From positions 19,840,001-19,904,000 of the forward strand of contig CM106585.1 in NCBI GenBank assembly GCA_048013815.1: a stretch of DNA of 64,000 nt. The letters are read 5' to 3'. Under the pieces are notes generated by a model, which had not been told where the DNA came from, searched no databases, and saw nothing but the letters and a program-made list of their open reading frames with translations. Source of the DNA: Setoptus koraiensis. Taxonomy: Eukaryota > Animalia > Arthropoda. The translations under genes and the position numbers were made by a program. Position 1 is the stretch's first letter, and each line of letters begins with the position of its first letter. Shown piece after piece: positions 8,599-61,886 of the stretch.

Positions 8599-11188
<2,590 letters not shown>

Positions 11189-11262
11189 ACAATCATAATG
11201 CATAAGCAGATTCAGTATTTGAAGCGAAATGAACGAAAAATTTTTCATCATGATCTGATTTA

Positions 11263-21230: not shown

Positions 21231-22357
21231 CAAATTATGTCCACTACACGTGTTGTCTCTCTGTATGTCCAAAAGCTAAATCTACAGGTCCGTCGATTGT
21301 TAGGCATGTAATATAATTATCGGCTCGTGGTAGGATAATAAAAGGATTAATGCATGTAGAATGTGTTCAGCTCACGGGACGTTTCACTTGACATTTTGGT
21401 AGACAGACTATTTGGATCAGCTGGACTGAATAGAGCTACGGGCGGTTTTTCGAAACAGCAGCGAGAGAAACACGACAAGGCGAGGAATAAAATTTTTGTA
21501 AAAGAAGATTTGTCTACAGTTCTCGCCGTGATGGGGAGAACGTGCTCAAAATCGATTCGAAAGCATGAGAAGCTTTCGAAGTCATGCAAGCACTCGTTTT
21601 CGAAAATTCTGATTTGTCAGGCGATCGGCTGTCAGCAATCGTCCAGCAATCGAACACTTATCAATCGTAATCCTGTTGCTATTCGGCGCGAAAATTGTGA
21701 AAACTTGTATGCAGTCTGTAGCTATCACGCAATGCAAAAGCTAATCATTCCAACATTCGCATAAATGTGACGGAAAAGTGGTCCATGATTTGCGGAGCGA
21801 AAATAGCCATATCGACGCAGTACGAATGGAGCTGATCAAAAACATCTCTGTTTTATGCCGTTTATGACACAATCCTACCACAGAGCAAACAATAATATGT
21901 TGAGTTTGGTTCCCTATGAAGTTTCGTGCCACGATTAAACGGAATGTGTGGTATGAGAGATCGATTACTCGAAAAAAGGGGTTCCCGCGTTTCATCAACA
22001 AGGCGAATAGGAGTTTCGGATGAGAAAAGTTGGTTGTTCTTTGTGTGTGTCGTCCCACTAAAACCTAGAAATTCTAAAAATTGACTTTCAGTGCGTTACA
22101 AAAACAACCCACTTAGCAATGACGCATGATTCAGGTAAACCCGCTAGGCAAACGATCTTCACTAAAGATGTTTCAGTATCAAACCCTTAGCTAATTCAAT
22201 TATGCGTGGCTCACCAACTCAAGTACATCAACTCAAGCGCGAACCAAAACAACAACAACTTCGAGTAAACAATAGAGTTGCAAAATAAGCATACTAGTAC
22301 ACTCTTGTTAGAAGCAATCAATGAACAGCAACATTTGATCACCATTTAAACTATAAG

Positions 22358-24630
22358 ATGGACTCTATCAAAATAAATATCTTTTGCCATTTCCTTTTTG
22401 TTATGACTTTCATCAACGGATCGATCTATTTAATGTTTGATGCAAATGACAAGCAAGCAGCAATAAGAAATTCACACAGTCCGATGAGGTCAGAGAGAAG
22501 ATCATTCGAAAGAACGCAAGATTTAGTGAAGTTCTATCTCAGTGCCAGACAAGGACGAGCTTTTTTAACCTGGTTCATAGTCGATCTCGTGTTTGGAGTT
22601 TGCATAGTGACCTATCTACTATTATACGGGTTCGCTAATGAAAGACTTGTTTTGCAATTGAGATTGCCGAACTGGTTGAGCGATATGTTTCTATATTATA
22701 GTTACACTCGCATGATCAACAAAGTGGCTGTGCTACTATTGCTTGAACTTTATTTGTTCCGCTCGAGAAATGTTGGAAAAGCTATATTCGCGAAAGAAGG
22801 CCATGGTTGCGAGCACCTTGTGGACGCTATTTCCTACGTGAGATCCCTGGAATTGACACCACGAGCCTGGATGTATGTTCTCGGTCTGACCGATACAGTC
22901 AAATGTAAAGATCGAGTGCATCCTGAGAAGGTTGAACGTCACAGTCAATTTGAATTTAAAGTTTTAATAAGTATGGCAGCAGATGAAATGAGTGAACAGA
23001 TAAAAACTCGAGGCGAAAATGCAAATGGCCAATCTATGTGCCACCCAATTAAGACTGACAAAGTGGGCTTCGGTCTAGAGTCAACCAATTTATATCCAGA
23101 CGATTTAGAAAAAACACAAAATGGAGGTGAATTCTTCGATTTCGATAATGAGTTTCGCGAAATTCACTATCAAATCGACACTTCGAAGACATCCTGCAAG
23201 AGAGGCACTTTTCATAAAATGGATCTAAGGACATTGAGAGTGCTAAGCTACCTCAATGTTATCGTCACTCTGTCCTTTGTCGCCGGGATGATTTTATACA
23301 CAATAGCTTCGCTGACGGTTGAATTCACTCACTGTCATTACTCTGTGACGTTGTTCCTCAGCCAGCGTCTTTTTCCATACATCATGCTTTTATTGATCAT
23401 TTGCCAATGCATAGCTGGAAATATGGATATTGGCAAGTTTGTTTTGGAGAGTTTGATCTTCCATAGCAAGGCGAAGCGCACAGTAACTTTCTCCTCGCAA
23501 CTAGTGAAATTATTCCGGCATCATAGTAAACAGGTCAGAACTTCATTGGTCATACCAAGCACGCTTGAAACAAACGCCGGAACAAGAAATCATTTGGGAT
23601 ACAATCATAAGACCATTCAAGGGGTGAGAATGACGACGGATGACAACAGTGTATTCTGCAAACATGAGTCTATGATAAACTTCCCCAGCAAAAAGTACCT
23701 GGGCCCCAGACCGCCTGCTGTAATGCTGAATGACGAAAACGAACAAAATTTGGTCGCATTGTCGGAAAAAATCGATCAATTCGTCAAAATGGTGATGGAA
23801 TTACGTGGAGATTTGGATCAATTGAAACTCTTTTATACCTCCTATTTGCATATAGAACTTGTTTTCAGATTGCCTTGTGTCGTGCTGACTCTGGCCTCAC
23901 TTATGAAGATGACAGACTTGGACGCTCTCCAACTTCAAGTGCTAGGTATTCTTTTCTTGAATTATTTGTTATCCTTGGTTGTGATCAGTTTCACTACCGC
24001 TCTTATCCATGTAAAAGTGAGTATTGGTTATCAACAGTTTATTGATAGCATCACAGGTCTCTTAGAAAGTTCTCGATTATATTTGAATGCTTGGAAATAG
24101 AGAATTAGCGCATTTCAGAAGACAGATATTGACCGGCCCAACTCTCTATCGGATGTCTGGATCGAACATCAAGCTGAAAAAAAAAACACTCTGTCACGTC
24201 TACGACTACAATCTGGCTGAGAGCTAGGGGGATATTTCACAATTAATTCATCATTAGTTAATCGTTATCCTTTCCTATTCGCTTCTCTCCCACGTCGATA
24301 CATATCTCTTTTTATCTAGTTTGGAACACTCAATCGGGATATGCAGAATCTATTTATTCATCAATCGCTTATGAGTGAATTCAATTTGCAACGATTGCTC
24401 GGTATATCTGAAGATTTGATGAGAGTCGAGAATATTTCGTTTGTTATCGCAGGTATTTACCCCGTGACACCGGGAAAATTACCTTTGGTAAGTGCAAGCC
24501 ATGCTCAAATCATATCGTGTTTATCAAATCTTCTACCTACAATTAACTCTCCTCAAATCCTCATTTTTTCCTGTAGATCTTAGGATGGATCGTATCTGGC
24601 ATGATAGTACTGTTGCAGTTCATCTTGTAG
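22358..24630 (+). CDS. Gustatory-receptor-superfamily 7TM chemoreceptor, copy 1 (626 aa)
   Basis: Exons 22358-24016, 24320-24487 and 24577-24630, with phase-0 GT-AG introns near the 3' end as is typical of GR genes. There are multiple hydrophobic helices and the C-terminus is FVIAGIYPVTPGKLPLILGWIVSGMIVLLQFIL. Confidence 0.85.
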
Positions 24631-25587
24631 AAAGGCACACCTTGCATCATTTTCATTCTTATTGATGAGCTTGGGAGTTCATGAAACGAACGCGATGTCC
24701 GCACTCATTTTGAAGAGTTCATTGACGACGCCGCAATCGTGGCACAATTCTAAATCTACTCATCATCACACAAACTGTCGCATCTAGATGGAGCATCCAT
24801 GTTTTTTCAATTCAATGAATGAATGAATATCCTTTGGCTCTGACAATTTTGAAATCGAATCGCAAAGCCTCAATCATGAGAAGTTTTCACGAGGTCCGGC
24901 AACTGATCGTTGCAAGAATTTCCGATTTGTGAGGCAATCTGCAGTGCCGTTCAGGCTGTCAGCAATCGTCCACCAACCGATCTTTTCGAACGTAATCCAA
25001 ATGCGATACAGCGAAAAATTGTGAAAACCTTCATATACTTTGTAGCAATCACGCAATACAAATCTAATCATCAGCCAGTCGCGGGAATATAGCGGAAAAG
25101 TAGTACATAATTTGCGTACATATGGACCGTAAAGAGCCATATCGACGCAGTACGAATGGAGCTTAACAGAAACATTTCTGTCTCATGCCGTATATGACAC
25201 GATCCTACTGCAGAGTAAACATTGAGATGGTTTCATTTTCGTCTAAACGTTGTTTCCCATTGATTTCCATGCTTTATGGAGTTTCGTGCCTCGATTACAC
25301 GAACACTACGTGGTATGAGGGAACAATTAATCATTAGGTGCTCTCGTGTTTCACTAGCAAGGCGTGCAGTTTCGGATGCGAAAAGTTTGTCATTCTTTGT
25401 TTGCCGTTCTTTGCTTCCTGTAAAATCCAGAAATCGATTTCCAGTGTGTTATAGAAACAAGCTACTCAACTATATATAGACACCAACTGTATCAACTCAA
25501 GCGCAACCCAAAACATTAATTTCTTCAACAATATAATAGAGTTGCAATATAAACATAGCAACATTTGATAGCCGCTCATACTGTACG

Positions 25588-27711
25588 ATGGACTCTATCA
25601 AAATTAATATCTTTGGTCATCTCATTTTCGTCATGATCTTCATTAATAGTACGATCTATTTAATATCCAATGTAAATGACAAGCAAGCAGCTAGAAGAAA
25701 ATCCGACTGTTCAATCAGATCGGAGAAAAAATTATTCAAAAGAATGCGAGATCTAGTGAAGTTATATCTCAGTGCCAGACAAGGACGAGCTTTTTTAACC
25801 TGGTTCATAGTCGATCTCACCTTGGGGGTATGCATATTGACCTATCTAATATTATACGGGTTCGCTAACGATAGCCTTGTTTTGCAATTGAGATTGCCGA
25901 ATTGGTTGAGCGATATGTTTCTATGGTATAGATACTCTCGGATGATGAATAAAGTGACTGCGCTACTGATACTTGAAGTTTATTTGCTCCGCTGCAGAAA
26001 TGTTGGAAAAGCTATATTAGCGAGTGAAGGCCATGGTCGCAGGCACCTTGCGGACTCTATTTCCTACTTGAAATCACTGCAATTAACACCACGAGCCTGG
26101 ATGTATATTCTCGGTCTGACCGATACAGTCAAATGTAAAGATCGAATGCATCCTGAGAAGATTCCACATTACAGTCAGTTTGATATGAAAGTTTTAATAG
26201 ATATAACGACAGATAGAAGAAGTGTGCAGAGAAGAAACTCGTGCCCAGATGAAAACGGGAATAGTCCATTTGAGGTTCACCAGATCGAGAACGGTAGAGT
26301 GAGTTTAAGTCGAAAGTTAAGCAATTCGTATTCAGGCGATTTAGAAAAAATACAACACGAAGGCGAATTGTTCGATTTCGATAATGAGTTCCGTGAAATT
26401 CACTATCAATTCGACACTTCGAAGACATCCTGCAAGAGAGGCACTTTTCATAAAATGGATCTGAAGACATTGCGAGAGATTACCTACATCAATGTTATCG
26501 TCTCTCTGGTCACTGGTTTCGGTTACATTTTCTACGCAAAAGTTTCGTTGATCGTTGAATTTATCCACTGTCATTATTCGGTGACGTTGTTCCTCAGTCG
26601 ACGTCTTTTTCCGTACACCATGCTTTTAATGACCGTTTTCCATTGCGTAGCAGGAAATATGGATATCGGCAAGTTTGTGTTGGAAAGTTTTATTCTTCGT
26701 AGCAAGGCGAGGCGCACAGTAATTTTCATCTCGCAACTAGTAAAACTGTACTGGTACCATAGGAAACAAGTAGCAAGTTCACTTGTTGATGCCAACAGTG
26801 CATATCGCAAGCATGAATCTATGAGAAACTTCCCCGGCAGAATGTACCTGAGCCGCAGGCCGGTTGCTGTAATGAATGACAAAAAAGAACATTTGGTCGC
26901 ATTGTCGAAGAAAATCGATCAATTCATCAAAATGGTGACGGAATTGCGTGGAGATTTGGATCAATTGAAACGATTTTATATCTCCTTTTTGCATATAGAA
27001 CTTATCTTTAGATTGCCCTGTGTCATGTTGACTTTGGCCACATTCGTGAAAATGACAGACTTGGACACACGTCAATTTCAAGTGTTGGTTGTTCTTTTCG
27101 CCAGTCATTGGATTGCCTTGGTTGTAATCAGTTTCAGTGCTGCTCTTATTCATGTAAAAGTGCGTATCTTGATGCACTATCACGAGTCTCTTAGAGAGTT
27201 TGAGAAAATATTCGAATGCCCGAAAATAACCCTTAGAGAATAAGCGAAAATAATCGTCAGAAAACTGGCCCGATTCTCTATCGATTTCTGGATCGAGCTA
27301 CGATATGGCTAAGAGACAGGGATGTTCCACAGTTATTTAATTGTTTTTCACCTTTCCTGTTCATTTCCTCTCCACATAAATACGCATTTTCTGTATCTAG
27401 TTCGGGACCATCAACCGTGAGATACAGAACCTGATTGTCCATCAATCGCTGATGAGTGAACTCAATCTGCATCAATTGCTCGCAATATCCGAAGATTTGA
27501 TGATCGACGAGAATATTTCGTTTGTTATCGCAGGCATTTACCCCGTGACACCAGGAAATTTACCTTTGGTAAGTGCAAGCCATGCTCAAATCATATCGTG
27601 TTTATCAAATCTTCTACCTACAATTAACTCTCCTCAAATCCTCATTTTTTCCTGTAGATCTTAGGATGGATCCTTACTGGCATGGTAATACTGTTGCAGT
27701 TCATCTTGTAG
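25588..27711 (+). CDS. GR-superfamily chemoreceptor, copy 2 (597 aa, 29-aa in-frame deletion)
   Basis: Exons 25588-27159, 27401-27568 and 27658-27711. C-terminus ILGWILTGMVILLQFIL. Confidence 0.85.
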
Positions 27712-29203
27712 AAAGGCACACCTTGCATCATTTTCATTCTTATTGATGAGCTTGGGAGTTCATGAAACGAACGCGATGTCCGCACTCATTTTGAAGAGTT
27801 CATTGACGACGTCGCAATCGTGGCACGATTTGGAATCTACTCATCATCAAATAAACTGTCGCATCGAGACAAGGCAAAACCGATATGTATTGCTACCAAT
27901 ACAAATCGAAACGAAATATCCGGAGGCTCAGGCTTCAGATTTGAATGAACGCATTTACGAAAAAATATTAGTCTCGGTACCTTAGGTTTTACGTGATTCT
28001 AACCAAGACTGCGCGACTTTTCTCACTATTTTTTATTTCATCTTATAGTGACGTCGTTTAGAGCCAGAATTAGCCTTGTATCTCAGCCCTCTCTGGGTTA
28101 AACGGGGCATCAAAGTTGAAATTCTGAGAAAAGTGGGCTTGCCTGGTGAACGAAACACCCGAAACAGAAATAAACCAGATTTATAGCTACACCCGAGAGA
28201 GATCTTTCCAACCATACTCTACTTTCAAAAATCGAAGACCAAAAATAAAAACACCCTAAAATGGGACAACCCCTTAATTCAGCATTAGTTAATCGTTCCG
28301 AACAAAGCTTACAGTTTCACAGAGCCTCAAATTTCAATGCAATCTATATGTTGCTTCTTTTCAATTGAATGAATGAATGAATTTCCGATGGCTCTGATAA
28401 TTTTGGAATCGAATCGCAAAGCCTCACTCATGAGAAGTTTCCACAAAGTCCGGCAGCTAACCGTTACTAGAAATTATGATTTGTCAGGCAATCTGCACTG
28501 CCGTTTCGGCTGTCAGCAATCGTCCAGCAATCGAACACTTTTCAATATTAATCCTGTTGTAATCCGGCGCGAAAATTGTGAAAACTTGTATATAGTCTGT
28601 AGCTATCACGCAATATTGAAGCTAATCATTCGACAATCCAGGAAATATGAAGGAGAGGACGTCTATAATTTTCGTAGCGAAAATAGGCACATCGAAGCAG
28701 CACGAATAGAGCTTCCCAAAGATATTTCTGTTTGACACCGTAAAAAACTCAGCCCAACCATTGAGTAAACATTGATATGTTAAAATCGATTCTTCGGGGT
28801 GTCGTGCTCGATTATAAGATATGCGTTGCATGAGGGATCACTTATTCGTTACGTGTTCTTGTGTTTCACGAAAATGGCATGGAGAAGCTCTGGATGCAGA
28901 AAGTTACTCGTACTTGTGTACTGAATCCTAGAGAATCGAAAGATTAATTTTCAATGTGCCACAGGAGTGAGTTACCAGGTAACTAATTCAGGGAAATGTT
29001 CAATGCGAACTATCTTTACTGAAGATGTTTCAGTATCAAATCCTTCGCTGCCTCGATTATGTAGAGCTCACCGACTGTATCAACTCAAGCGCGAACCGAA
29101 ACACCAACTTCTTCAGACGCATGATGGAGATGCAATGTAAACATACAATCTTGTTGGAAGCAATAGATGAACAGCAACATTTAATGGCCATTTAAATTGT
29201 AAG

Positions 29204-31352
29204 ATGGACTCTATCAAAATTAATATCTTTCGTCATCTCATTTTTATTATGACTTTCATCAACGGATCGATTTATTTAGTGCCCGATACAAAAAGCGACA
29301 TGCAAGCACCAATGAGAACATCAGACAGTTCGATCAAGTCAGAGAGAAGATCATTCCAGAGGATGCGAGATCGAGCGAAGTATCACCTTAGTGGCAGACA
29401 AGGAAAAGCTTATTTAATCTGGCTAATACTCGATGTCGCAATGGGATTGTGCATACTGACCTATCTACTAGTATACGGGTTCGCTAATGAAAGACTTGTT
29501 TTGCAATTGGGATTACCGGACTGGTTGAGCGATATGTTTCTATGCTATAGATACGCTCGCATGCTCAACAAAGTGGCTATGCTCCTAATGCTCGAAGTTT
29601 ATTTGCTTCGCTCGAGAAATATTGGAAAAGCTATGGTCGCGTATGAGGGCCGTGGTTGCAGGCACCTTGTGGACGCTGTTTCCTACTTGAGATCACTGCA
29701 ATTAACACCACGAGCTTGGATGTATATTCTCGGTCTGACCGAAACAGTCAGATGTAAAGATCGAATGCATCGTGATAAAATTCCACATTACAGTCAGTTC
29801 GATCTGGAAGTTTCAGTAGATACAACGACAGATGACAGAAGTGAACATAGAAGGAACACGTGTCCAGTCGGAAATGCGAATGATCGATTTAAGGGACATA
29901 CGATCGAGACAGGTAGAGTGAGCTTAGGTCGAGAGCCAACCAATTTATATCCAGACGATTTAGAAAAAACACAAAATAGAGGCAAATTGTTCGATTTCGA
30001 TAATGAGTTTCGCGAAATTCACTATCAAATCGACACTTCGAAAACATCCTGCAAGAGAGGCACTTTTCATAAAATGGATCTGAGGACATTGAGAATGCTG
30101 AGCTACATTAATATTTTCTCCACTTTGATCGCTGTTGGCGGGCTCATTTCTTACACAATAGCTTCGCTGACGGTTGAATTCGCCCACTGTCATTACTCGG
30201 TGACATTGTTCCTCAGCCAGCGTCTTTTTTCATACACCATGCTTTTATTGACCGTTTTCAAAGGCGTAGCTGGAAATACGGATATAAGCAAGTTTGTTTT
30301 GGAGAGTATGATTCTCCAAAGCAAGGCAAAGCGCACAGTGATTTTCTCCTCGCAACTAGAAAAATTATTCCGGCATCATAGTAAACAGGTCAGAACTACA
30401 TTGGTCATACCAAGCACCCTCGAAACAAACGCCGCAGGAAGAAATCAGTTAAATTACTATCGTAGTAGTATTCAAGAGGCAAGAATGATGGCTGATGCCA
30501 ACAGTGTGTATCGCAAACATGAATCTATGGGAAACTTTCCCGGCAAAATGTACCTGAGCCGCAGGCCGGTTGCTGTAATGAATGACGAAAGAGAACATTT
30601 AGTCGCATTGTCGAAGAAAATCGATCAATTCATCAAAATGGTGATGGAATTGCGTGAAGATTTGGATCAATTGAAAAGATTTTATACCTTCTATTTGCAT
30701 ATAGAACTTGTTTGTAGATTGCCCTGTATCGTGATGACTCTGGCTACATTCGTGGAAATGACAGACTTGGACACCCATCAATTTCAAGTATTGGTGATTG
30801 TTTTCATGGGTTACTGGTTTGCCTTGGTTGTGGTCAGTTTCTCTGCTGCTCTCATCCATGTACAAGTGAGTAGCTTGATCCGCATTGATTATCAACAGTT
30901 TATTGATAGCATCATAGGTCTCTCATCACTACAATCTGACTAAGGAGCAGGGATATTCCACAATTAAGTCATCATTAGTTAATCGTTATCACCTTTGCAA
31001 TTCATTTCTCGCCCACCTTGATACATATCTCTTGTATGTAGTTTGAAACACTCAATCGGGAGATGCAGAATCTATTTGTTCATCAATCGCTCATAAGTGA
31101 ATTCAATTTACAACGACTGCTCGGTATATCTGAAGATTTAATGAAATTCGAGAATATTTCGTTCGTTATGGCAGGTATTTACCCCGTTACACCAGGAAAT
31201 TTACCTTTGGTAAGTGCAAGCCATGCTTAGATCATGTCGTGCTTATCAAATCTTCCAGCTAGAATTAACTCGCCTCAAATCCTCATTCTTTCCTGTAGAT
31301 TCTAGGATGGATCGTATCTGGCTTGATAATACTATTGCAGTTCATGTTGTAA
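29204..31352 (+). CDS. GR-superfamily chemoreceptor, copy 3 (627 aa)
   Basis: Exons 29204-30865, 31042-31209 and 31299-31352. C-terminus ILGWIVSGLIILLQFML. Confidence 0.85.
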
Positions 31353-32016
31353 AAAGTCTGAACGTGCATTACTTTTACTCTTATTTAGAAGCTTAGAAGT
31401 TCATCGAAAGAACTCGATGTCGGCACACTTATTAGGGACTTCCGATTGTCGCAATCGTGGCACGATTTCGAATCTCTTCATCATTACACAAACTTTTTGC
31501 GTCACTCCAAGATTGCAAAGCGGTGTGTATCACTGCCCTACTGCAGCCAAGACAGCAGTGCCACAAGTGTAAACTGTCTAACAACAATGTGGGACAGGTC
31601 AGCTGCTCTAGTAGCACCTCTGTTGCCGGATGACATATCCAATGGATAGAAATCCGAACGAAATCCCGAGCTTCAAGTTTCACGGAGCTTGAAATTTCCA
31701 TGCAATCTATGTGTAAATTCTTTTCAACTGAATGAATTTTCCATCACGACTGGCCCTGGTAATTTTGAAATCGAATCGCAAAGCCTTAATCATGAAGTTT
31801 TCCAAGCCATGCAACCACTCGTTCTTAGAAATTCTGATTTCCAGGCAATTTTCCAGTGAAACTTGTATCAAATCTGCACTATCACGCGATACAAAATCTT
31901 ATCATTCGCCAATCACGGAAGAGAGAGAAGTAGATCATAATTTGCGGGGTAAAAAGGGGCCCCATCGCAGCAGTTCGAATGGTGCTTACCGAGAACTTTT
32001 ATGTTTTATGTCGTAT

Positions 32017-32230
32017 TAAAATCAAATTTCACCGAAAAAAACTCGAACCTTGTGCCATTTTTGTGTAAAAAAGTGGCAAAAAGTATGGATTAAATACCTA
32101 ATTAATAAAATACATTTGTATTCAATTCATACTTTTTGTCACTTTTTTACATTTTTGCCATTTTGGCAAAAAAAGGGCAAAAACTTTATTACATTTTTTA
32201 CATAGACAAAAAACGTTTTTTCCAGCACAC
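32017..32230. mobile_element. AT-rich foldback insertion (possible MITE remnant) in the upstream module of copy 4
   Basis: The segment is absent from the paralogous modules. It has an internal inverted repeat, 32064-32086 versus 32128-32151. No TIR or TSD was identified and the boundaries are approximate. Confidence 0.4.
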
Positions 32231-32639
32231 TACTGAAGATTAATTGATGAAGTTTCATGCCTCGATTGCACGAAATGCGTGGTATGAGAGATCGATCACT
32301 TTCTATGTCTTCTTTCCTGATGAAAAATATGGTTGTGCAAGTCGTCCTACTTTTACCTACACTCTACCCTAGAAAATATAAACTAAAATTTCCAGTTGGA
32401 TACAGAAATGAGTCACTAAGCTATGACTTATTCTAGCATATTTGCATAATACACTATCTTCGCGGAAGATCGTCAAGTATCATAACCTCCGTTGACTCTA
32501 ATATCTATAGCTCACCTACATCAACTCAAGCATAAACCAATGCAGCTATTTCTTCCGAAACACACGAGAAATATGAAAATACACTCTTGTTGCGAGGTAG
32601 TGATGAACAACAACGTTTGATATCCATTTAAACTGTAAG

Positions 32640-34852
32640 ATGGACTCTATCAAGATTAATATCTTTTGTCATTTCATTTTCGCTCTAACCTTCATAAACG
32701 GCTCAATCTATTTAATGTCCGATGTAAAAGACATGCAAGCAGCTAGAAGAAAATCAGACTGTTCAAACAGATCGGAGAAAAAATTATCCAAAAGAATGCG
32801 AGATCGAATAAAGTTTTATCTCAGTGGCATAAAAGGACAAGCATTTCTAACCTGGTTGATAGTCGATCTCGCATTGGGAGCGTGCATACTGACCAATGTA
32901 CTAGCCTACGGTTTCGCAGACGAAAACATTGTTTCGCATCTAGGACTGCCAGACTGGATAGGCGATATGTTTCGATACTATAGATACAATCGCACGATCA
33001 ACAAAGAGGCTGTGCTACTATTGCTTGAACTTTATTTGCTCCGCTGCAGAAATATTGGAGAAGCTATATTCGCGAAAGAAGGCCATGGTTGTAGGCACCT
33101 TGCGGACGCTATTTCCTACTTGAGATCTCTGAAATTGACACCACGAGCCTGGATGTATCTTCTTGGTCTGACTGATGCAGTCAAATGTAAAGATCGAGTG
33201 CATCGTGAAAAGATAAAACGTAACAGTCAATTTGACACGAACGTTCTGATAAGTATGACGACAGGTGAAAGAAGTGAACAGAGAAGAAACTCCAGTCCAG
33301 CCGAAAAGGCGAATAGACGATTTACAGGTCACCCGATCGAGAGTGGCAAAGTGAGCTCATGTCGAGAGCCAACCGATTGGTTTCCAGACGATTTAGAAAA
33401 AGCACAGCACGAAGGCGAATTGTTCGATTTTGATAATGAGTTTCGCGAAATTCACTATCAAATCGACACTTCGAAAACATCCTACAAGAGAGGCACTTTT
33501 CATAAAGTGGATCTGAGGACATTGAGAGTGCTAAGCTACCTTAGTGTCTTCTTCACATTGTTCGCTGTTTGCGGGTTCACCTTGTTCGCAAAAGCTTCGC
33601 TGACGGTTGAATTTACTCACTGTCATTACTCGGTGACATTGTTCCTCAGCCAACGTCTTTTTCCATACACCATGCTTTTATTATTCATTTTCCAATTCAT
33701 CGCTCTCAATGGCGATATTGGCAAATTTGTTTTGGAGAGTTTCATCTTCCATAGCAAGGCGAAGCGCACAGTGATCTTCTCCTCGCAACTAGTGAAACAA
33801 TGCTGCCATCAGAGGCAAAAAGTAAGAAATCTTGTTGTCATACCGACCACCTTCGAAACAAGCTCAGGACTAAGAAATAATTTGAAATACAATCCTATGA
33901 CTGTTCAAGATGTGACAATGATAGTGGATGCCAGCAATGTATTTTGCAAACATGAGTCGATGAGATATTTTTGCAGAGAAAATTACCTGAGCTGCGAGCC
34001 GGTTGCTCCAATGAGCTACAAGAAAGAGCAAAATCCGGTCGAATTGTCGGAGAAAATCGATCAATTCATCAGAATGGTGATGGAATTGCGTGAAGATTTG
34101 GATCAATTGAAACGCTCTTATACCTCCTATTTGCATATAGAACTTGTTTTTAGATTGCCCTGTATCATGTTGACTCTGGCCACATTCATGAAAATGACGT
34201 CAGATCTGGACACCCATCAACTTCAAGTGTTAGTGATTGTTTTCGCCAGTTTATGGGGTACCTCGGTTGTGATTAGTTTCAGTGCCGCTCTTATCCATGT
34301 AAAAGTGAGTATGCGCATTGGTCATCAAAAGTTTCTCTTAGAGGGTTTGCGAGTATATTTGAATGCTCGAAAATACGTTTCTGTATTCATCACTAAAAGA
34401 ACGAGTATGTCACTTCTATAGCCATAATAGCTTGACTGAGGGTAAGGGATATTTCACAATTAATTCATCATTAATTTATCGCTACCCTACCTTTCCTATT
34501 CATTGCCTTCCCCATCCCAATACATATTTTTTTGCATCTAGTTTGGGACCATCAATCGAGCAGTGCAGAATCTATTTGTTCATCAATCGCTTGTAAGTGA
34601 ATTCAATTTGCAACGATTGCTCGCTATATCTGAAGATTTAATGAAAGTCGAGAATATTACGTTTGTTATCGCAGGTATTTACCCCGCTACACCTGGAAAA
34701 TTACCTCTGGTAAGTGCCAGTCATGCTTAGATCATGTCGTGTTTATCGTATCTTCTAAATACAATTAACTGTCCCCAAATCTATATTATTTTCTGTAGAT
34801 CCTAGGATGGATCGTATCTGGCATGATAATGCTGTTACAGTTCGTTTTGTAA
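32640..34852 (+). CDS. GR-superfamily chemoreceptor, copy 4 (628 aa)
   Basis: Exons 32640-34304, 34542-34709 and 34799-34852. C-terminus ILGWIVSGMIMLLQFVL. Confidence 0.85.
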
Positions 34853-35696
34853 AAATACTTAACCATGTGATACTTTCATTCATACCGATTAGCTTGGGAG
34901 TCTATCCCGAGGGCTCAATGTCGGCCATTATAATCAACAGGCAATCGCAACTTTCTGTCAAAAGCTCTATGTGAGCATAGGTTCTATTTATGATGGGCAC
35001 ACGAGCGCACTAGTGTTTAAAAATTTTACTATATTGGGCGCCATTACGGAAAAAAATGGTGCATGAGATTTTGAGAAGGCACGAAATAAAAGCACCGCAA
35101 TATGGGACAACCCTCATTGGTTTCATCGGAACAGCTTTCCAATGAAGGCTTGATGAGTGACCTGGTGCGAACCCAACAAAGCGAAACATTCGAAATAATA
35201 CTCAACGCACAGTCGAAGCTAGACAGTCTTCATCATTTTTTTTGTGAAAACCCTTACAACTCGATAATATTGGCCGAAACGGTAAAAATAAATGGCCTCG
35301 TAAGAGCTTCAAATGATCAGAAAAGTAACGTTACAATGCGGTAATTACAGAGTTTGGTTAGCCGTATTCATCAGTAAGCTGAGTCTATGGGTGTACCTGC
35401 CTCATGAACTGACAGTTATCAAGTCTTGAGCAATTGGGGCTTGCGACTATTGAGACAAGAAAGATTTGGAGTCTAAAAAAAGCCAAAATTGGGAAGCTCT
35501 GCTGCGCCGGATCACGTCAAATGTGTCGAACACTCAGTCAATTAATGGGTGAGTCTAATCGCCCCTAACTAATAAATCTTTCTGTTCATATGGCGCAGGC
35601 TTGAATTTGTAGCGAACCATCGCCAGAAGAGGCTGTCTGAGTATTGTCAAGACCATCATTTTTCAACGAATTAATTGAAAATAAAATCCCATATCG

Positions 35697-36070
35697 ATTA
35701 CATCGAGATCTAAAGCTCGGTGAAAGTCGAGGCTTTGGATATTTTTTGTTCTGATTTCTATCGTCAACATTTACCTTTTAGCCCCTCGCCGGGCCCTGAA
35801 AATTTCGGCGCCCTCCTGTGGACGATTCTTGAGATATATCAAGAATGAGATTTATATTTCAATGTGGGAAGCCCTGTATCTGTTGCTAATCAGGGCTTGA
35901 TCTCAAGCTAACAAAGGGACACTCGCCACATTGTTGTTAGACAGTGTACGTTACAGTGTCTTAGTGCTGTCTAGGCTGCAGTAGGACATCATCGTGTCTT
36001 GCTGAAATGAATTTGCGCCCTGTCCGAGAGTTTTTTAGAACTTTAATTGAAAATATATGTATGAAAACAG
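35697..36070 (+). repeat. Duplicated non-coding block, paralogous to 40101-40591
   Basis: Shared tracts include GTCAACATTTAC, CCCTGAAAATTTC.GCGCCCTCC.GTGGACGATTC.TGAGATATATCAAGAATGAGATTT and TTACAGTGTCTTAGTGCTGTCTAGGCTGC. Confidence 0.9.
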
Positions 36071-36982
36071 GGGAAGAAAGTGAGATGAAGCATTGAACAA
36101 GCGATGAAATCTGAATTGAATCAATACACGGTTTCGAAAAATTCGTAGCGAGAGAAAAAATCTTTACCGCTCCTCCGGAGGTTTTTTGAACGAACAGAAA
36201 CATCGAAAGGCCAGGGATGAAACAAGATTTGTTTACTGTTCTCGTCCCGATTGAGAGAACCCGTGAGAAATAGATTTGAAAAACCTCAATCATGAGTGGT
36301 CATGCAACAACTCTTTTTCATGCAGTCGGCAGTCAGTGAATCCTCCACCAGCCGAACTTTTCAATCGTAATCTTATTGCAATTTGGCGCGAAGATTGTGA
36401 AAACTTGTGTCCAATCTGCGCTATCACGCAATGCAAAAACTTATCATCAGCCAATTGCAGAAACTTCGAAAAGTAGACCATGATTCGCGGGGTGAAAATG
36501 GCCATATCAAAGCAGTTCGAATGGGGCCTACCATAAGCTTTTCTACCTTACGCTAAAGTCCGTATAAAACTCAATCCTACTGCACATTAAACATCTTGAT
36601 GTTAAGTGCGTCCATTACACGAAATGCGTGGTATAAGAGATTAATCAATTTTTATCTGTACTTGAGTTTCACGGATGAGAATAGTTGGTTGCTCTTTGTG
36701 TGGTTCGAACTGAAACCCACACTAGACTCAAGAAAATCTAAAATTAATTATGGTCAATCACACAAAGCGATTACTAATTTAGGTGAATGTGCAACGCGAA
36801 CCACCTTCAATGAAGATCGTTCATTATCAAATCCTTCGCTGACTAAATTATGTATAGCTCACTAACTGTATCAACAAAAACAACAAATTCTTCAAGGACA
36901 TTATAGAGATGCAATATAAACGTACACTCTTGTTGGGAGGTAGTGATGAACAACAACGTTTGATATTCATTTAAACTGTAAG

Positions 36983-39263
36983 ATGGACTCTATCAAAATT
37001 AATATCTTTTGTCATTTCCTCTTCATTATAACCTTCATCAACGGCTCAATCTATTTACTGTTCGATGTAAACGACATGCAAGCAGCTAGAAGAAAATCCG
37101 ACGATTCAATCAGATCGGAGAAAAAATTATTCAAAAGAATGCGAGATCGAATAAAGTTTTATCTCAGTGTCAGAAAAGGACGAGCATTTCTAACCTGGCT
37201 GATAGTCGATCTCGCATCGGGAGCGTGCATATTGACCTATACGGTATTATACGGGTTCGCTAGCGATAACCTTGTTTTGCAATTGGGACTACCAGAATGG
37301 ATAGGCGATATGTTTCTATGTTACAGGTACTCTCGCATGATCAACAAGGTGGGTGCGCTACTAATAATTCAACTTTATTTGGTACGTTGGGCAAATATTG
37401 GAGAAGCTATATTCGCGAAAGAAGGCCATGGTTGTAGGCACCTTGCGGACGCTATTTCCTACTTGAGATCTCTGAAATTGACACCACGAGCCTGGATGTA
37501 TCTTCTTGGTCTGACTGATGCAGTCAAATGTAAAGATCGAGTGCATCGTGAAAAGATAAAACGTAACAGTCAATTTGACACGAACGTTCTGATAAGTATG
37601 ACGACAGGTGAAAGAAGTGAACAGAGAAGAAACTCCAGTCCAGCCGAAAAGGCGAATAGACGATTTACAGGTCACCCGATCGAGAGTGGCAAAGTGAGCT
37701 CATGTCGAGAGCCAACCGATTGGTTTCCAGACGATTTAGAAAAAGCACAGCACGAAGGCGAATTGTTCGATTTTGATAATGAGTTTCGCGAAATTCACTA
37801 TCAAATCGACACTTCGAAAACATCCTACAAGAGACGCTCTTTTCATAAAGTGGATCTGAGGACATTGAGAGTGCTGTGCTACATCAATGTTATCGTCACA
37901 TTGTTCATTATGTGCTGGTTAAGTTTCTACATACAAGCTTCGTCGATGGTTGAATTTATCCACTGTCATTATTCGGTGACATTGTTCCTCAGTCGACGTC
38001 TTTTTCCGTACACCATGCTGCTGCTGACTATTACCCAATGCTTATTTGGAAATATAGATATTGCTAAATTTGTTCTCGAAAGTTTGATTCTTTATAGCAA
38101 GGCGAGGCGCACAGTAATCTTCTCCTCGCAACTGGTGAAACTTTATTGGCACCATAGAAAACATGTCGTAACTTCAATTGTCACACCAAGCAATCTTGGA
38201 ACAAGAGCCGGAACAAGAAATCATTTGAAATACAATCGAAATATGAATATTCAAGGGGTGAGAATGATGGCGGACAGTGTATTTCGCAAACATGAATCTA
38301 TGAGAAACTTCCCCAGTAAAATGTACATGAGCTGCAGGCCGGCTGCTGTAATGAATGACAAAAAAGGACTCAATTTGGTTACATTGTCGAAGAAAATCGA
38401 TCAATTCATCAGAATGGTGACGGAGGTTCGCGGAGATTTAGATCAATTAAAACGCTTATATACTTCTCATTTGCACATGGAGCTTGTTTTTAGATTGCCC
38501 TGTGTCATGTTGACTCTGGCCACATTCATGAAAATGACAGACTTGGACAATCGTCAGCTTCAAGTGCTGGTGTTCGTTTTCGGTGGTTATTGGATTGCTC
38601 TGGTTGTGATCAGTTTGAGTGCCGCTGTTTTACATGTAAAAGTGGGTATCTTTCTAAACATTGACGATTAGCAGTATAGTGATGCCATCAAGAATTTCTG
38701 AGAGAGTTTGAGAGCCGTTAGAGTATACTTAGATGTTCGAAAACAACTCCTAAAAATTAACGTTTCGTAGAAAACAGAGATTGGCCGGCCTGGCTCTCAA
38801 TCGGTGTCTGGATTGAGCGCCAATCTAAAAAAAAAATGCGTCTATAACTTCAATCTGGGACAGAGATATTTTACAATTATTTAATCCATTATTGGCTAAT
38901 TGTCATTTCACTTTTCGTACTCATTTTTTCTCCACACAAATACACATTTCCTCTATATCTAGTTTCTAACGATCAATCGTGAGATGCAGAATCTATTTGT
39001 CCAGCAGCCGCTAATGAGCAAATTTAATTTGCGAAAATTGCTAGCTATATCTGAGGATTTGTTGAGCGTCGAGAATATCTCGTTTGTTATTGCTGGTATT
39101 TACCCCTTGACACCTGGAAAATTACCTTTGGTAAGTGTCAGTCAGATCATGTCGTGTTCATCTTATCTAGCCGCAAGTAACTGTCCCAAATCATCATTTA
39201 TTTCTGTAGATCCTAGGATGGGTCCTAACCGGAATGATAATACTGTTGCAGTTCGTGCTGTAA
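36983..39263 (+). CDS. GR-superfamily chemoreceptor, copy 5 (626 aa)
   Basis: Exons 36983-38641, 38963-39130 and 39210-39263. C-terminus ILGWVLTGMIILLQFVL. Confidence 0.85.
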
Positions 39264-40591: not shown

Positions 40592-41036
40592 AGACTCACA
40601 TGATCGGCACTCGGTGCACCAGTGTGAGTAACATATCTCAGCATACAGATGATAATCAGTCAAGAAAAATGTTTGTTGCTAGATTGGCACAATAGGGCTA
40701 TCAACTTGTGTGAGTCAAGAGAGCGAGAGATAAACCAACATTAGCTAGACATTTTTCGCTTCTCATATAAAAATACAACAAATATGAGTAATAATGCAAC
40801 CGCAGCAACAATAACACTATTGACTAAATGACTGTATAAGTGGAGCGATTGTACTGTATAATCGCAGTACAACAACCAATTGCAGTATACAACGCCGTTG
40901 TGATAGACAACAGTATCAGAGACGGACCGACGGACGTCTTAAGATGATTCCATTCACGGACGAGGACACTGTTCAATCAATTCTTGCCGATCGTCACCAC
41001 TAGTCAGCCCACAATCGCCTACCTAATTAGACACAC

Positions 41037-41128
41037 ACACTTTGCGACGCCAATTGGACACTTCGCGACGCCAATCGGACACTTTGCGACGCCAATTGGA
41101 CACTTCGCGACGCCAATCGGACACTTCG
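41037..41128 (+). repeat. 21-bp tandem repeat, 4.4 copies, alternating A/B variants (42-bp higher-order unit)
   Basis: ACACTTTGCGACGCCAATTGG and ACACTTCGCGACGCCAATCGG in the order A-B-A-B. Confidence 0.95.
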
Positions 41129-41304
41129 AGGCCCGACTGCCCAATGCACAAACAGTCGAAATTATCCGCTCCAATCAGACTGTTACTAGCCGAACGACAA
41201 CTGTTGAAATTAACACACTCATACATTTAAATTGCGCTCAACATCGATCAACGGAATCATCGGAGGACACGCCGTCGGAAAGCACCGAAAAAAACACGAC
41301 CACC

Positions 41305-43030
41305 ATGCATTTGGCTAGCGCTCAATACCGGCTGACGGCCATGCTGGCACTGATTGCCATGTTCTTCTTTGTCGAAATAATCGTTGGTTACATCACAAAC
41401 TCTATGGCATTAGTGGCGGATTCGTTTCACATGTTCAGCGATGTTGTGGCTCTATTGATTGCCTTCATTAGTGTCAGGATGTCACCAAAGAAATGGTCCA
41501 AGAACACCTTCGGTTGGGCCAGAGCAGAGATTTTGGGCGCGCTCGTCAATGCCGTCTTCTTGTGTGCATTGTGTTTCTTATTTATAATTGAATCTATTAA
41601 ACGCTTCATAGACCCACAACAAATACACGATCCCGTTCTCCTTTTGATCGTTGGCAGTCTCGGCCTGCTCATCAACCTGATAGGATTGTTATTATTTAAG
41701 AGTAGCGGCACTCATCATTGTCACCATCATCATCATCATCATCATGCCCATCAAGCGCACCACCATCACCGTTCGTTAGCGCAATCGGAGATTATTATAA
41801 CGGACATCATTCATCGGGCCTCCGACGAGGACCATCACAAAGGCAGCAACCAGGATTTGTTGTACAACGCAACTCAAAAGGCCAATCAATTGCAACCGTC
41901 CGCTCTCATCGACAACGACAATGTTTCATTAAGCCCCAAAAAATTAATCAACAGGTTAGCCGATGGAAATTTGGAGCCCAAACTTAGCGGGGCCAGTGAT
42001 ATAGTGACAGGCAAACACAGCAGCAACAACAACAACAACAGTAACCAAAACAAATCCCACCAATCGCTTATCATGACAGATGGCTCTATGAATAATCTTT
42101 CGGCCATCATTGATACAAGTCAATGTGATCAATTCAAGTCAAATCATCATAATCATGTAAATAGTAATGATAACAAAAACAATCAAAGTCACGAGCATAA
42201 ACACCAGCACTCGAGCACTCAAATGAACATGAGGGGCGTCTTTTTACACGCCATGGCCGACGCCATCAGTAGTGTCATAGTGATGATATCCGCCGTCATC
42301 CAGATCTTCTATACCGAATGGACATTTCGATTGTACGTGGACCCAGCGCTTAGCGTCATAATGGTATGCCTGATATTAAAGCATACCTTGCCCCTCCGTA
42401 AGTACTCGACCTGACTTGTTACATCATACTGTGTTGTATCATCATATCTAGCGAGCCATTACACAGCAACTACTAATTACAGTTATCTCGTCGTTTGAAT
42501 TTATAATTAATTTTATTTACAGTGACCGAGTCTGCCATGATACTTCTGCAGGCAGTGCCGAAGCACATTCAGGTTGATTCGTTGCAACGGCGCCTACTAG
42601 AAGAGGTTTGTACAACATTGTCACAAATGGTGACATAGTTGAGGATAATTCAATATAATCCGCAATAAGCTCTCAATAACTCTAACAAAAATCCATTCAA
42701 TCCACGACAAACAATATACGTGTTTATCTTTAGGTCCCAGGTATCGTGAGTGTGCACGAAATGCACGTTTGGCAACTCACCGGCGACAGGATAATTGCAA
42801 CGGCTCACATCAGATGCCACAAACTACAGGACTATATGCGTGTAGCTAGAAAAGTGAAAGAATTCTTCCACAACGAGGGCATACATTCTACCACCATACA
42901 GCCCGAATTTTTGGACTCGGACAACCAAGTGTTTCCGCCACAATATGACAATTGCCTGCTCGATTGTCCCCCTCTCCAGCGAACCATTTGTGCGCCCCGA
43001 ACCTGCTGCTGGGTTAAATATCTGGTTTAG
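41305..43030 (+). CDS. SLC30A1: Cation diffusion facilitator zinc exporter, ZnT1/ZnT63C-like, 3 exons, 490 aa
   Basis: Exons 41305-42397, 42523-42605 and 42734-43030, starting at CACCATG. Motifs are SMALVADSFHMFSD, NTFGWARAEILGALVNAVFL, a His-rich loop, NMRGVFLHAMAD, SVHEMHVWQL..ATAHI, GIHSTTIQPEF and a Cys-rich tail. The H/D-H/D site indicates zinc. The 3' end could include a further exon. Confidence 0.92.
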
Positions 43031-43500: not shown

Positions 43501-46500
43501 TCAGTCTCGGGTGACCAATTCTGTGTCACTCTCGAACGTCGAGTACTGCTGCTGAAGGGCCCTGAGAATGTCGTGATAATTGTTCAGCTGATCATATCTG
43601 TTTGTCGTTGCGTTTCTCGCAATTTTTCGGCTGGCATGAGGATAGTGATTGGGCGCCGACTCGATCATTGTGTCTTGCTGCTCTCTTTGGTTTTGCTGCT
43701 CTTGGCGCAATTGTTGCTGATGCTGCTGTTGTCGCTGTTGTTGTTGTTGTTGCTGGTGCTGCAGCGACGAGCCGCTACGCGGTTTCATCGCGGGCGCCGG
43801 CGGTTTCTTGATTGCGGGCTTAGTGGAACTCTGGCACGACAGGGCAAACTTGAGATCTTTTATCATTTCTTCGCACATTGAGTCGCGATTTGCGCTCGTC
43901 TTGCGCGATTTCCACATAAATTCCGCAATGGCAAACAGGAAGCTGAGCCCGAGGCCGCCCAGCAGCACGACAAATACGCCGCCCACATTGCCCAAACTGA
44001 GCTCGGTGACAACGCCCCCCTTGACGTCGTCAGTACAGGTTCCGCCGCCCCGTCGCTCCTTCCACCAGCGATTTTTCAGTATGTGTAGCACGCCGTTCTC
44101 TTGCAAATGCAAAATGCCCTCGCTCAACAGGGTCCGATAGGGCCGCTTCCGGGTTGGCTTTTTGCTGGTGGCAACGCCGTAGCCCTTGCTGTCGAGCAGG
44201 CCGCCTATCTGGGTGAGATTGCAATTGCGCTCCGTGATGTACTCTATGGAGGTGGACTCCATGAAGAAGGCAAATTTGCCCTCTTCGACGCGCTCTTGGC
44301 CCTCGTCGTTGCTCTTCACGTAGGTCTTGTATTTTTCCATTGTCTGACCAATTCGTTTATAAGTGTCAATGTGCGAATCGCTGAAGAAGGTGCACGTTGT
44401 TCCCGACTCGACGCACCCGTACCTAATCTCTTGTTGAACGCTCAAATCTTTGGCATTCTCAATGGGATAAACCACCTTTTCCACTGTGAGAAAAGCGGCC
44501 AAATTGGCCGTGTAAGACGATATCATAATCAGCGTGAAAAAATACCAAATGCCCGCAATAGTTCGGGTAGACATGGACCGGGGCGTTAAATCGCTGCCCT
44601 GTTGCATGAGCGAGCCAGTTGTAAACCAAAATGAGTTCATTAGCGAGAAATTGTTTCGCATTACAATCTCGTTGCTGTCGTGCAAATCTTGCCTACACGG
44701 ATGCGGATTGGCCCATTCGTAGGGCGACAAGCGGCCCACAAAAAACAGCAACGTACTAATGCTTGCGTAGGCGGCCACCACGTAGGCCCACACGTCGCTG
44801 GAGAAGGGCGACAAAAACGAGAACAGGGTATTCTGTTTGGTGGTTGGCTTCTTGAACAGTATGGATATGCCCGTGTTCATAAACGGCAACGTAAAATCGA
44901 CAGCTTCCTCGCGTTGCGACGTTATGGTCAAATCTACGATGGCCAAATCGGCCTTGCCCGATATTATTTCGCCTATCATGCCGTTCCACGATTGGGTGCC
45001 GTTCTTGTGCTTGATTTTGGCCCCGTACTTGCCGTCGTCCACCTCCTTGAAGCGATACTTGAAGCCCACCAATTTCGACAATTCGTGTATGAGGTCTACC
45101 GCAAAGCCCTCGTACTGATTGTTGCCCTCTTGCTTGTTTGGGGTCTCCTTGAGCATGAAATAAGGCTGCGTCCGTCTGGTGGTCACTATGAGTGTCTCCA
45201 TGTCGTCGCTAGAATCGAGAAAGATCCTCTGAAATAGCTGCTCGTTCACCATGAGCGCCCCAGAACCAGATTTGGCCTTGTCGAATTTTGGATGCAGCAG
45301 CGCCACAACTTCCGGTGTAGCGGCTGGCCGATTTTCGATGTTGAGTTGTGCATTGGACAAAGATGGCGCTAGCATCACTGGACCACTTGTTGCCATTGTG
45401 TCGTCTTGCAATACTCTCGAACTCCTAACACTCGACGAATTGATGCGAACGCCGACAGCCTGACCAGTCTGGCCAGCCACGGAAAAATTGTACTGCTGAT
45501 AGTTGAAATTTTTCCTTGTCGATCCCTGTTGCTGTTGTTGCTGCTGCTGCGGCGGTTCGAATTGAGGCGCCCTATTGAAGGTCGACCAATTAATGTTGCT
45601 GCTGGCGCCGCCGCCGCTGCGCAAACTTCGCATATACGCCTCCGAATTCCACTGGCCCACCTTTATCAGGCCGATTGAGGGCGCCACAGTCATGAGGTCC
45701 AGAGTGAAGCCGGTGCGCAGGCCCCGCTCGTCGAAACTCACCAAACCGCTCAGGCCCGAAAACGTAATCCGGCGCATATAGTTAACGATTGAGCTGCCAT
45801 AGGGCCACGGATCGCCGTCTTTTGAGCACGATATTGGCTGAACGTCTATCGATTGGCCCGTGTCTAAATCGTTGAGGCCCAGCATCAACAGGAGCAGCCC
45901 GTCGTGAATGAGCGCACTTTTTGTTGATAATTTCAATTGAGCATTTCGCGCCATTTTATCCTGTTGCTCTAACAAATACGCATCTACGGCCCGCCGAGCC
46001 GGCCCGTTGTCATCGACACTGTCAGCTCCGTGCTTATTCTTGGTCTTTGAGGTCACGTCATCGTAGGCATGCGACGGCTCCAGGTAGCCGCTTGGGGTGT
46101 CAGAGTGAGGCGCGAAGTTGGCCTCTTTTCTTTGGGTGGACTTGAGACTTTTTTCGTTGTCGTTGTCGTCGTCGCACGCACTCGTACACAGTCCCAGGCT
46201 CCTCAGATAGGCCTCATCAAATTGCCTGGCAACACTAAAACCGTTGCCTGTATTGTCCGGTGGCCCGTTCGACGTGCTGGCCTCATTTGGGCTCACAGCG
46301 GCTTTGTTTCTGGCGCCTAAATCGAGATCACGAACCAGCTTGAACGACGTTATCAGGGTCTTGCTGTATTTGAAATCCTCTAAATCAATCATATGTAAAT
46401 CAAGCGATGCTATTAAATAACTGTATTTCTCTGTCATGCAACCCACTTGTTGAGCATGCTTCAAGGCCGTGTATAAATTCTCGTCTCTGACATCTAGCAA

Positions 46501-47635
46501 TACGTTTGTTTCGCCGGATAGTTTTAATTTCCAGAAGAGCTCTCTGAACGATGTGGTTTTTTCCCTCTTTTGAACATTGGCTAATTTTATAATTTTTTCA
46601 TCTGTTTCGCTTGTGTTGCCCGTTGCGCTGACAAGCCTTTCAGTTGCCATATTTGCGTCGTTGTAACTGGTGGCGTCCTCTTCGGCCAAAACTGTTTCGT
46701 CTTCGTAGGCTCCCAGTACTTGCTGGCTCGAGCGTGGCTTCGAACCAACCATATTGGCAGCGGAGAGCTTCTTTCCTGCCGAGGACGAAGACGACGAACT
46801 CAGCGTCGGCGAGTATTGAAACAGTCGAATTGACCATTTGCTTGTCCAAGTGCCCGACGATTCCCTAAACAGACTCTGCAACCTGATCATCGAGTCCGAA
46901 TCTTCGTACACTATGGCAAACGAGGTCCAATTCCAGGCGTTGAACAATTCTATGTAGGCGGCAGTCAACAATTGCGCTGGCGGATACAAATTGACCGTTA
47001 AGTCCTGGCGTTTTGGCGCGAAATCCGCGTGCATCTCTATATGGGGCACCTCTAGTGTATCACAGATTGATTGAACGTGTTGTATGCTTCTGCCGTTACT
47101 GGGACCGAAAATGGCCACCACTCCGGACAACAACAACTTGCAAACCCTGTCGTCGGCCTCAAACGAGCTGTCTCTATTGACCAATCGCTCTATCAGGGGC
47201 TCTATCAGTGGTCCACTATTAACTGGCTGGCTATTTTCGTTTGTGTCCCGCTGAAATCTTTCGTCAGGACCAAGCACCTCCGAATGGTGGCTGTTGTTTG
47301 CGATCAGCACCTCAGCTGCTTGCTGCGAATGGCCAGCGGAAAAAATTGATCTATCGTTCATCATTTGTATTGTCTTGATAAAAATATCCTCTTGTTCCAC
47401 ATTGGACTTCTCAAACAGGGCACCTGACAGATCGAATACAACAAGCATATTTGCGTCAGAATACACTCAAACTCAGCAATTTGCCATTATTGTTTGATAC
47501 TGATGTCGCCATGATGTTTCATTTTTCTATCGCTGCCCACTCACCTATGCGAATCAGATCCGGCATACCATGAACGTGCTGAAAACAATTTAATTCAAAA
47601 ATAACAATTATGGTGAATAGTAATAAATATTGCAT
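43501..47635 (-). CDS. Ionotropic glutamate receptor, kainate-type, 2 exons, about 1337 aa
   Basis: Exon 1 (47635-47545) encodes a signal peptide and MPDLIRIG; intron 47544-47424 is GT-AG; exon 2 is 47423-43501. It has an ATD, S1 DLAIVDLTITSQREEAVDF, pore FWFTTGSLMQQG, SYTANLAAFLT and S2 GTT..FFMESTSIEY. The start may lie further upstream, up to 47791. Confidence 0.95.
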
Positions 47636-51775: not shown

Positions 51776-51815
51776 TTGTGAGGCCTTGTGAGGCCTTGTG
51801 AGGCCTTGCGAGGCC
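51776..51815. repeat. 10-bp tandem repeat TTGTGAGGCC x4
   Basis: Seen directly in the sequence. Confidence 0.9.
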
Positions 51816-52151
51816 GTTTGTGGCGCCACAAGCGGCCACTTGACTCGGCTCGCAAGTCCGCATGTGTTGGCAACTGCGTTTAATCAAGAAAAACATCATC
51901 ATGTGACACGCGACACCCGAGATTGGCTGACATTGAGAGCCGCTTGTGCCGCCAGACAAGCTTGCATTGGGTGTCTCTGCCAGCCAATGCAAGCCGATTC
52001 GGCCAGCGCGGGGCCCCAGCTAATGACGCAACATAAATAACCACCGCAAGCAGTTAAGTTGAGCATCAAGCCCGCGCGCTGTGTCAGCAGCGGTCGTCCG
52101 CTGCCAGTGCCAAACTAACATTTGCGCCCCTAAACACACATCTCTACCTCT

Positions 52152-52196
52152 ACCTTTTATACCTTTTATACCTTTTATACCTTTCATACCTTTCAT
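52152..52196. repeat. 9-bp tandem repeat ACCTTT(T/C)AT x5
   Basis: Seen directly in the sequence. Confidence 0.9.
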
Positions 52197-61830: not shown

Positions 61831-61886
61831 CGTTCCGTTAGTCGCGTTCCGTCGGTCGCGTTCTGTCGGTCGCGTTCCGTCGGCCG
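61831..61886. repeat. 14-bp tandem repeat CGTTCCGTCGGTCG x4
   Basis: Seen directly in the sequence. Confidence 0.9.

Follow-up and report, generated by a model that had tools for sequence, protein, structure and literature searches.

Gustatory receptor (GR) genes have as a hallmark a phase-0 last intron, which is located six codons before the motif in the seventh transmembrane segment (TM7) (PMC2680840). In BmGr9, the Thr of this motif forms a hydroxyl ring and serves as the fulcrum of S7b movement, the Tyr contacts the head group of a pore-penetrating lipid, and the Q and F constitute the gate. Tyr occupies its motif position in 80.7% of insect GRs (PMC11100771), is represented by H or N in Drosophila Gr36 and Gr59c/d (PMC9998090), and in nearly all spider mite TuGR-A/B the TM7 motif is unrecognizable (PMC5203786). 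For eriophyoid mites, a near-complete loss of GRs has been reported, with two found in Aculops lycopersici (PMC7738191). Here we describe a five-gene array from the eriophyoid mite Setoptus koraiensis, which probably represents a tandem expansion of a highly divergent and oversized branch of the GR/seven-transmembrane ion channel (7TMIC) superfamily. The array is part of a 64,000-nt stretch of DNA (GenBank assembly GCA_048013815.1, contig CM106585.1, positions 19,840,001 to 19,904,000 of the forward strand), referred to below as the window, in which all coordinates are given.

Between positions 22358 and 39263, the window contains five long open reading frames (ORFs), all on the plus strand, 551-593 codons in length and with N-termini of the type MDSIKINIF. 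In each gene, a donor site (GTGAGT, GTGCGT or GTGGGT) directly follows the sequence ..(I/L)HV(K/Q), and the ORF reads through it for another 10-39 codons; automatic gene callers report that ORF alone, and the small exons are thereby hidden from an ORF track, as the initial annotation had pointed out. Exon 2 measures 168 nt (56 codons) and is flanked by (A/C)TCTAG or ATGTAG and by GTAAGT, while exon 3 consists of 51 nt (17 codons) plus a stop codon and follows CTGTAG in all five genes. Both introns are in phase 0 and of the GT..AG type throughout, with intron 1 ranging from 176 to 321 nt, while intron 2 is 79 nt long in gene 5 and 89 nt long in the other four genes. The predicted products of genes 1-5 are 626, 597, 627, 628 and 626 amino acids (aa) long, and the last exon reads ILGW(I/V)(V/L)(S/T)G(M/L)..LLQF.L in each of them. 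The earlier observation of an array of five intact three-exon genes, 597-628 aa in product length and sharing this 17-aa last exon, is thus confirmed at the places described, with the splice junctions being predicted from the sequence.

The position of the last intron agrees with the GR hallmark: exon 3 opens with six codons, ILGW(I/V)(V/L), and continues with the S/T-G pair in 5/5 genes, so that the 3′ phase-0 intron is placed exactly where a GR would have it. The pair belongs to the motif (S/T)G-h5-QF, present in all five genes, in which the hydroxyl residue and QF stand at the exact GR spacing and the protein ends two residues past QF. Because QF spacing and intron offset both fix the alignment, S/T is in register with the Thr and Gly with the Tyr of the canonical motif; an alternative register, with Gly-Trp placed on Thr-Tyr, was rejected, as neither the h5-QF spacing nor the offset of six codons from the intron would survive it.

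The predicted topology is likewise GR-like. Numbered according to hydropathy segments and AlphaFold2 (AF2) helices of the exon 1 product, hydrophobic segments are found at residues 3-28, 65-95, ~117-146, 292-325, 329-363, 494-519 and 521-553, and in exon 3, and the combined evidence delimits helices S0 (3-28), S1 (65-95), S2 (~117-146), S3 (290-325), S4 (330-396), S5 (459-517) and S6 (523-552), with S7a encoded by exon 2 and S7b by exon 3. Lys and Arg together number 8, 18 and 18 in the segments predicted to face inward, but 2, 0 and 0 in those predicted to face outward, and the predicted outer loops are short (21, 4 and 5 aa), giving a predicted arrangement of seven transmembrane segments, an inner N-terminus and inner loops longer than the outer ones, as in a GR. 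Residues 3-28 were also considered as a signal peptide, which was rejected, since the next segment is rich in K/R, that is, cytoplasmic.

All searches were performed exon by exon. When exon 1 of gene 1 and its distant relative P0014 (21% identity) were placed among their ESM neighbors, the only named families were 7tm_7, odorant receptor, DUF3537, DUF267 and Trehalose_recp. Several results weigh against a GR assignment. At 1682 and 1817, the ESM recognition scores fall short of what the tool regards as strong evidence; neither Pfam 7tm_7 nor Trehalose_recp was matched by exon 1, exon 2 or 19 family members at E up to 10, any other Pfam hits being attributable to chance; and PDB sequence profile searches, run with exon 2 and with the exon 1 family, gave chance matches only (DP-1, SPC24, Nup54 and leptin). 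Tyr is absent from the second motif position, which carries Gly in 18 of 18 last exons, although this position is not strictly defining. Of the checks proposed in the initial annotation, the 7tm_7 hidden Markov model (HMM) search gave no match; as for the structural comparison, the AF2 model was unusable with the five paralogs as input (predicted local distance difference test, pLDDT, 33), and with 19 sequences, which yielded a mean pLDDT of 48 and 57-73 in the helices, Foldseek against PDB and an Atlas fold search produced no meaningful match.

Should these proteins belong to a lineage-specific multi-pass family unrelated to GRs, their resemblance in motif and intron would be due to chance. 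We regard this as quite unlikely, given that intron phase, the six-codon offset, motif spacing and the position of the C-terminus all coincide in a protein with seven helices, an inner N-terminus and long inner loops; that two members with only ~21% identity have none but 7TMIC families among their named ESM neighbors; and that the longest structural alignments are those with GR/OR (odorant receptor) chains. In addition, divergent mite GRs usually escape Pfam as well, with only 8.9% of the accepted TuGRs matching 7tm_7 (PMC5203786). As intron position, motif spacing, topology, ESM neighbors and predicted structure point the same way, membership in the GR superfamily is probable, even though Pfam, PDB and Foldseek offer no match, and the original interpretation as a GR-type channel subfamily is partly supported.

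We also sought relatives of the array in other sequencing runs. A profile search covering 1.84 billion representatives yielded only 17 relatives, 12 of them with E < 1e-30, and all ten that were looked up are unnamed ORF calls known from Logan only, found in no named or annotated protein set. Neither exon 1 nor the 19-sequence alignment gave a match in a word-based protein search, though the larger library does contain relatives. At least 11 family members, organized in tandem arrays, are present in run SRR33593474. On their own contigs, nine relatives show an exon 2 that is bounded by AG/GT and again measures exactly 56 codons, and in eleven the last exon is preceded by AG, with the same six-codon offset layout as in the window genes. 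This exon plan is preserved in another species at an exon 1 identity of only 28-36%, and its sharing argues that the small exons are real. At locus L001 (positions 60-1298, run SRR18067441; P0013), exons 1 and 2 are fused in a single ORF, with intron 1 absent and the last intron kept, which shows that both parts belong to one protein; the contig end reads ..LLAWIASGVF. The shortest relative, L002 (positions 1569-1890, runs SRR18067513 and SRR18067596), has an exon 1 of 427 aa with short loops, and its last exon, ..VWILSGAVKLVCYVYDSI, keeps the Trp and Ser-Gly but has lost QF. On L008 (~10300-11200, run SRR33593474), a second family copy located downstream of P0012 is spread over several frames with stops (fragment P0017), and is likely a pseudogene or an assembly error.

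The substitution of Gly for Tyr extends to all 18 last exons available: five in the window, 11 in SRR33593474, and those of L001 and L002, with the relatives drawn from four other sequencing runs. Ten of the 11 relatives have S or T and nine have QF, the exceptions being F in place of Thr, QS and QC, so that Gly is more constant than QF, which is changed to QS or QC, or lost on L002. The Trp four residues before Gly is as constant as Gly itself. Its occurrence in 18/18 last exons makes Gly a family trait rather than a symptom of decay, and it is a real, fixed family signature under constraint. The initial annotation was correct in stating that Gly is fixed while all copies stay open-framed, but its description of the replaced Tyr as near-invariant was an overstatement, given the insect frequency, the Drosophila variants and the absence of the motif from most TuGRs mentioned above.

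Sequence conservation within the array follows the predicted exons. When the five paralogs are compared, nucleotide identity averages 83% for exon 2 and 84% for exon 3, but 44% for intron 1 and 52% for the 3′ flank; exons 2 and 3 thus form islands of conservation which are not expected by chance. The ratio of nonsynonymous to synonymous divergence (dN/dS) in pairwise comparisons of exon 1 is 0.41-0.56 (about 0.45), pairwise dN in exon 2 is 0.06-0.15 versus dS of 0.22-0.97, and the array is under purifying selection. It could be argued that the copies are decaying or non-functional, with exon 1 as the sole real ORF and the small exons as relics, inasmuch as exon 1 does run past its donor and gene callers give nothing else. 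We find this extremely improbable, since 15/15 exons are open and have canonical splice sites, dN in exon 2 is far below dS, both small exons stand out as islands, and they are kept in another species at the low exon 1 identity given above. The contention that the array is not decaying is further upheld by the dN/dS values and by the family-wide Gly.

The proteins have two large loops. The first intracellular loop (IL1), located after S2, is ~145-165 aa in length, and the second (IL2), joining the membrane portion of S4 to that of S5, measures ~125 aa, which substantiates the reported second long loop after TM4. As for the ~165-aa loop with three conserved blocks claimed earlier, its size and the block FDFDNEFREIHYQ.DTSKTS (5/5 genes) hold up, as does V(K/R)CKDR.H (5/5, one with R for K), but GHG.RHL is exact in only three of the five genes, gene 1 having GHGCEHL and gene 3 GRGCRHL. 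The majority fraction is 0.58 and 0.66 at the ends of IL1 (residues 147-189 and 256-289) and 0.30 in its middle (190-255), compared with 0.66 in S5, and of the four columns that are invariant in the family, F260, Q272 and H286 are located in the second IL1 block. These conserved ends and invariant columns suggest that IL1 is likely to hold a conserved cytoplasmic module.

On a GR-type reading of these features, each gene product most likely serves as one subunit in a ligand-gated cation channel of tetrameric type, presumably with a chemosensory role. The N-terminal S0 would be followed by S1, S2, the ~150-aa cytoplasmic IL1 with its conserved ends and variable middle, S3, and then long S4, S5 and S6 reaching into the cytoplasm around a variable IL2, with exon 2 supplying S7a and exon 3 the pore helix S7b. 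The hydroxyl ring (S/T) and the QF gate pair would be kept at exact spacing, rendering a cation-channel pore plausible. Loss of Tyr would remove the lipid contact; Gly would adjoin the fulcrum of S7b, where it could provide a hinge, and the interfacial or lipid contact could instead be made by the invariant Trp, which precedes it by one turn of the helix.

While descent from 7TMICs is retained, the proteins might alternatively serve as internal sensors or non-neuronal channels, as has been proposed for some Drosophila Grls, Gr28b or LITE-1, with the IL1 blocks acting in regulation by internal signals. This remains a minority option, albeit one to be taken seriously: the ends of IL1 are conserved as well as the best core helices, most invariant columns fall in its second block, and eriophyoids have very few sensilla (PMC7738191), but tandem arrays, gene conversion, dN/dS of about 0.45 and many divergent paralogs constitute the usual pattern of environmental chemoreceptors. 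The chemoreceptor interpretation can also be carried further, to a new, eriophyoid-only structural class of 7TMICs, in which Trp-x-x-(S/T)-Gly replaces the lipid-binding Tyr as the S7b hinge, the two-block module of IL1 places gating under the influence of a partner or signal inside the cell, and the smallest arthropods have kept a sizeable chemoreceptor repertoire missed by the published two-GR counts; taken as a whole, we view this extended version as rather unlikely.

The array has a tandem repeat unit of 3.2-4.3 kb. A 442-nt segment 100% identical in genes 4 and 5 (Table 1), with only 68-87% identity on its flanks, is the product of recent gene conversion. Intron 2 is exon-like in its average identity (81% over five genes), far above intron 1, and is 100% identical in genes 1 and 2 (24488-24576 and 27569-27657), which could reflect a conversion tract or an element for micro-exon splicing. 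Together, the identical 442-nt tract and the identical intron 2 suggest that gene conversion is ongoing. Two spurious ORFs, upstream of gene 1 (21363-21764) and between genes 2 and 3 (28373-28735), have in common the segment ..GCQQSSSNRTL.N.NPV.IRRENCENLY.VCSYHA.., and therefore the duplicated unit takes in intergenic or promoter DNA.

Table 1. Predicted exons of the five array genes and the gene-conversion tract (window coordinates).
Feature	Position	Strand	Description
Gene 1 exon 1	22358..24016	+	553 codons; S0, S1-S6, loops IL1 and IL2; ORF; donor GTGAGT
Gene 1 exon 2	24320..24487	+	56 codons; S6 end and S7a; acceptor ATCTAG, donor GTAAGT, phase 0
Gene 1 exon 3	24577..24630	+	17 codons and stop; S7b, ILGWIVSGMIVLLQFIL; acceptor CTGTAG
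Gene 2 exon 1	25588..27159	+	524 codons; IL2 with 30-codon deletion; donor GTGCGT
Gene 2 exon 2	27401..27568	+	
Gene 2 exon 3	27658..27711	+	ILGWILTGMVILLQFIL
Gene 3 exon 1	29204..30865	+	554 codons
Gene 3 exon 2	31042..31209	+	
Gene 3 exon 3	31299..31352	+	ILGWIVSGLIILLQFML
Gene 4 exon 1	32640..34304	+	555 codons
Gene 4 exon 2	34542..34709	+	
Gene 4 exon 3	34799..34852	+	ILGWIVSGMIMLLQFVL
Gene 5 exon 1	36983..38641	+	553 codons; donor GTGGGT
Gene 5 exon 2	38963..39130	+	
Gene 5 exon 3	39210..39263	+	ILGWVLTGMIILLQFVL
Gene-conversion tract, 442 nt	33050-33491 (gene 4) = 37393-37834 (gene 5)	+	100% identical; codons 137-284, loop IL1

Neighboring genes in the window are animal housekeeping genes consisting of single long exons. 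Among named sequences, the GFAT ORF comes closest to that of Fragariocoptes setiger, at 78%, and to that of Aceria tosichella, at 88% over 59% of the length, and another contig matches it at 95%. This identifies the host as an intron-poor eriophyoid mite; its own proteins are absent from the collections searched, and an exact look-up of the MLH1 encoded in the window found no record. The array is adjoined by a gene for a 1321-aa ionotropic glutamate receptor on the minus strand (43501-47466; ANF_receptor, Lig_chan-Glu_bd and Lig_chan domains), which is a single uninterrupted ORF, and a cation-efflux (CDF, zinc-transporter-like) gene at 40984-42414 codes for a protein in which HFATPIG occurs as a fourfold repeat close to the N-terminus and one loop contains consecutive His residues. 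From ~0.40, the G+C content climbs to 0.52-0.58 over the final third of the window (~44000-64000).

If the GR assignment is true, a hidden, expanded and maintained GR-like family would revise the picture of sensory reduction in these miniaturized herbivores, which include crop pests; receptors are not mentioned in the Floracarus preprint. The family would also represent a natural experiment in which the pore helix of a GR keeps the gate pair and the hydroxyl ring but always has Gly instead of the lipid-contacting Tyr, and would add a conserved cytoplasmic loop module to a compact channel scaffold.

Comparison of the array with known systems shows that it departs from typical arthropod GRs, such as BmGr9, DmGr43a and DmGr64a, which are ~400 aa in length and belong to 7tm_7, whereas the mite proteins of 597-628 aa do not match its HMM, have an S2-S3 loop of ~150 aa with conserved blocks, and carry Gly in place of Tyr with an invariant Trp four residues earlier. 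In other respects it resembles the TuGR expansions of an acariform mite: both are nearly invisible to Pfam and BLAST, are recognized by their topology, 3′ phase-0 introns and clade-specific TM7 residues, and combine tandem clusters with gene conversion. The window family, however, is much longer, keeps a recognizable S/T and QF, and occurs in a lineage reported to have two GRs (PMC7738191). A parallel for the loss of Tyr is provided by Drosophila Gr36, Gr59c/d, Grl36a and Grl43a, accepted as GRs or GR-like proteins, with the variant T(H/N)(S/A)hhhhQ(Y/F/W) (PMC9998090), in which Tyr is replaced without loss of the intron that precedes the TM7 exon, as is the case here, although the replacement is His or Asn rather than Gly and the proteins are of normal size. 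Finally, the plant and protist DUF3537 proteins and animal GRL 7TMICs, which are among the ESM neighbors, are similarly distant and recognized mainly by their fold, but they share neither intron nor TM7 signature with the mite family, which has retained the intron specific to GRs as well as QF.

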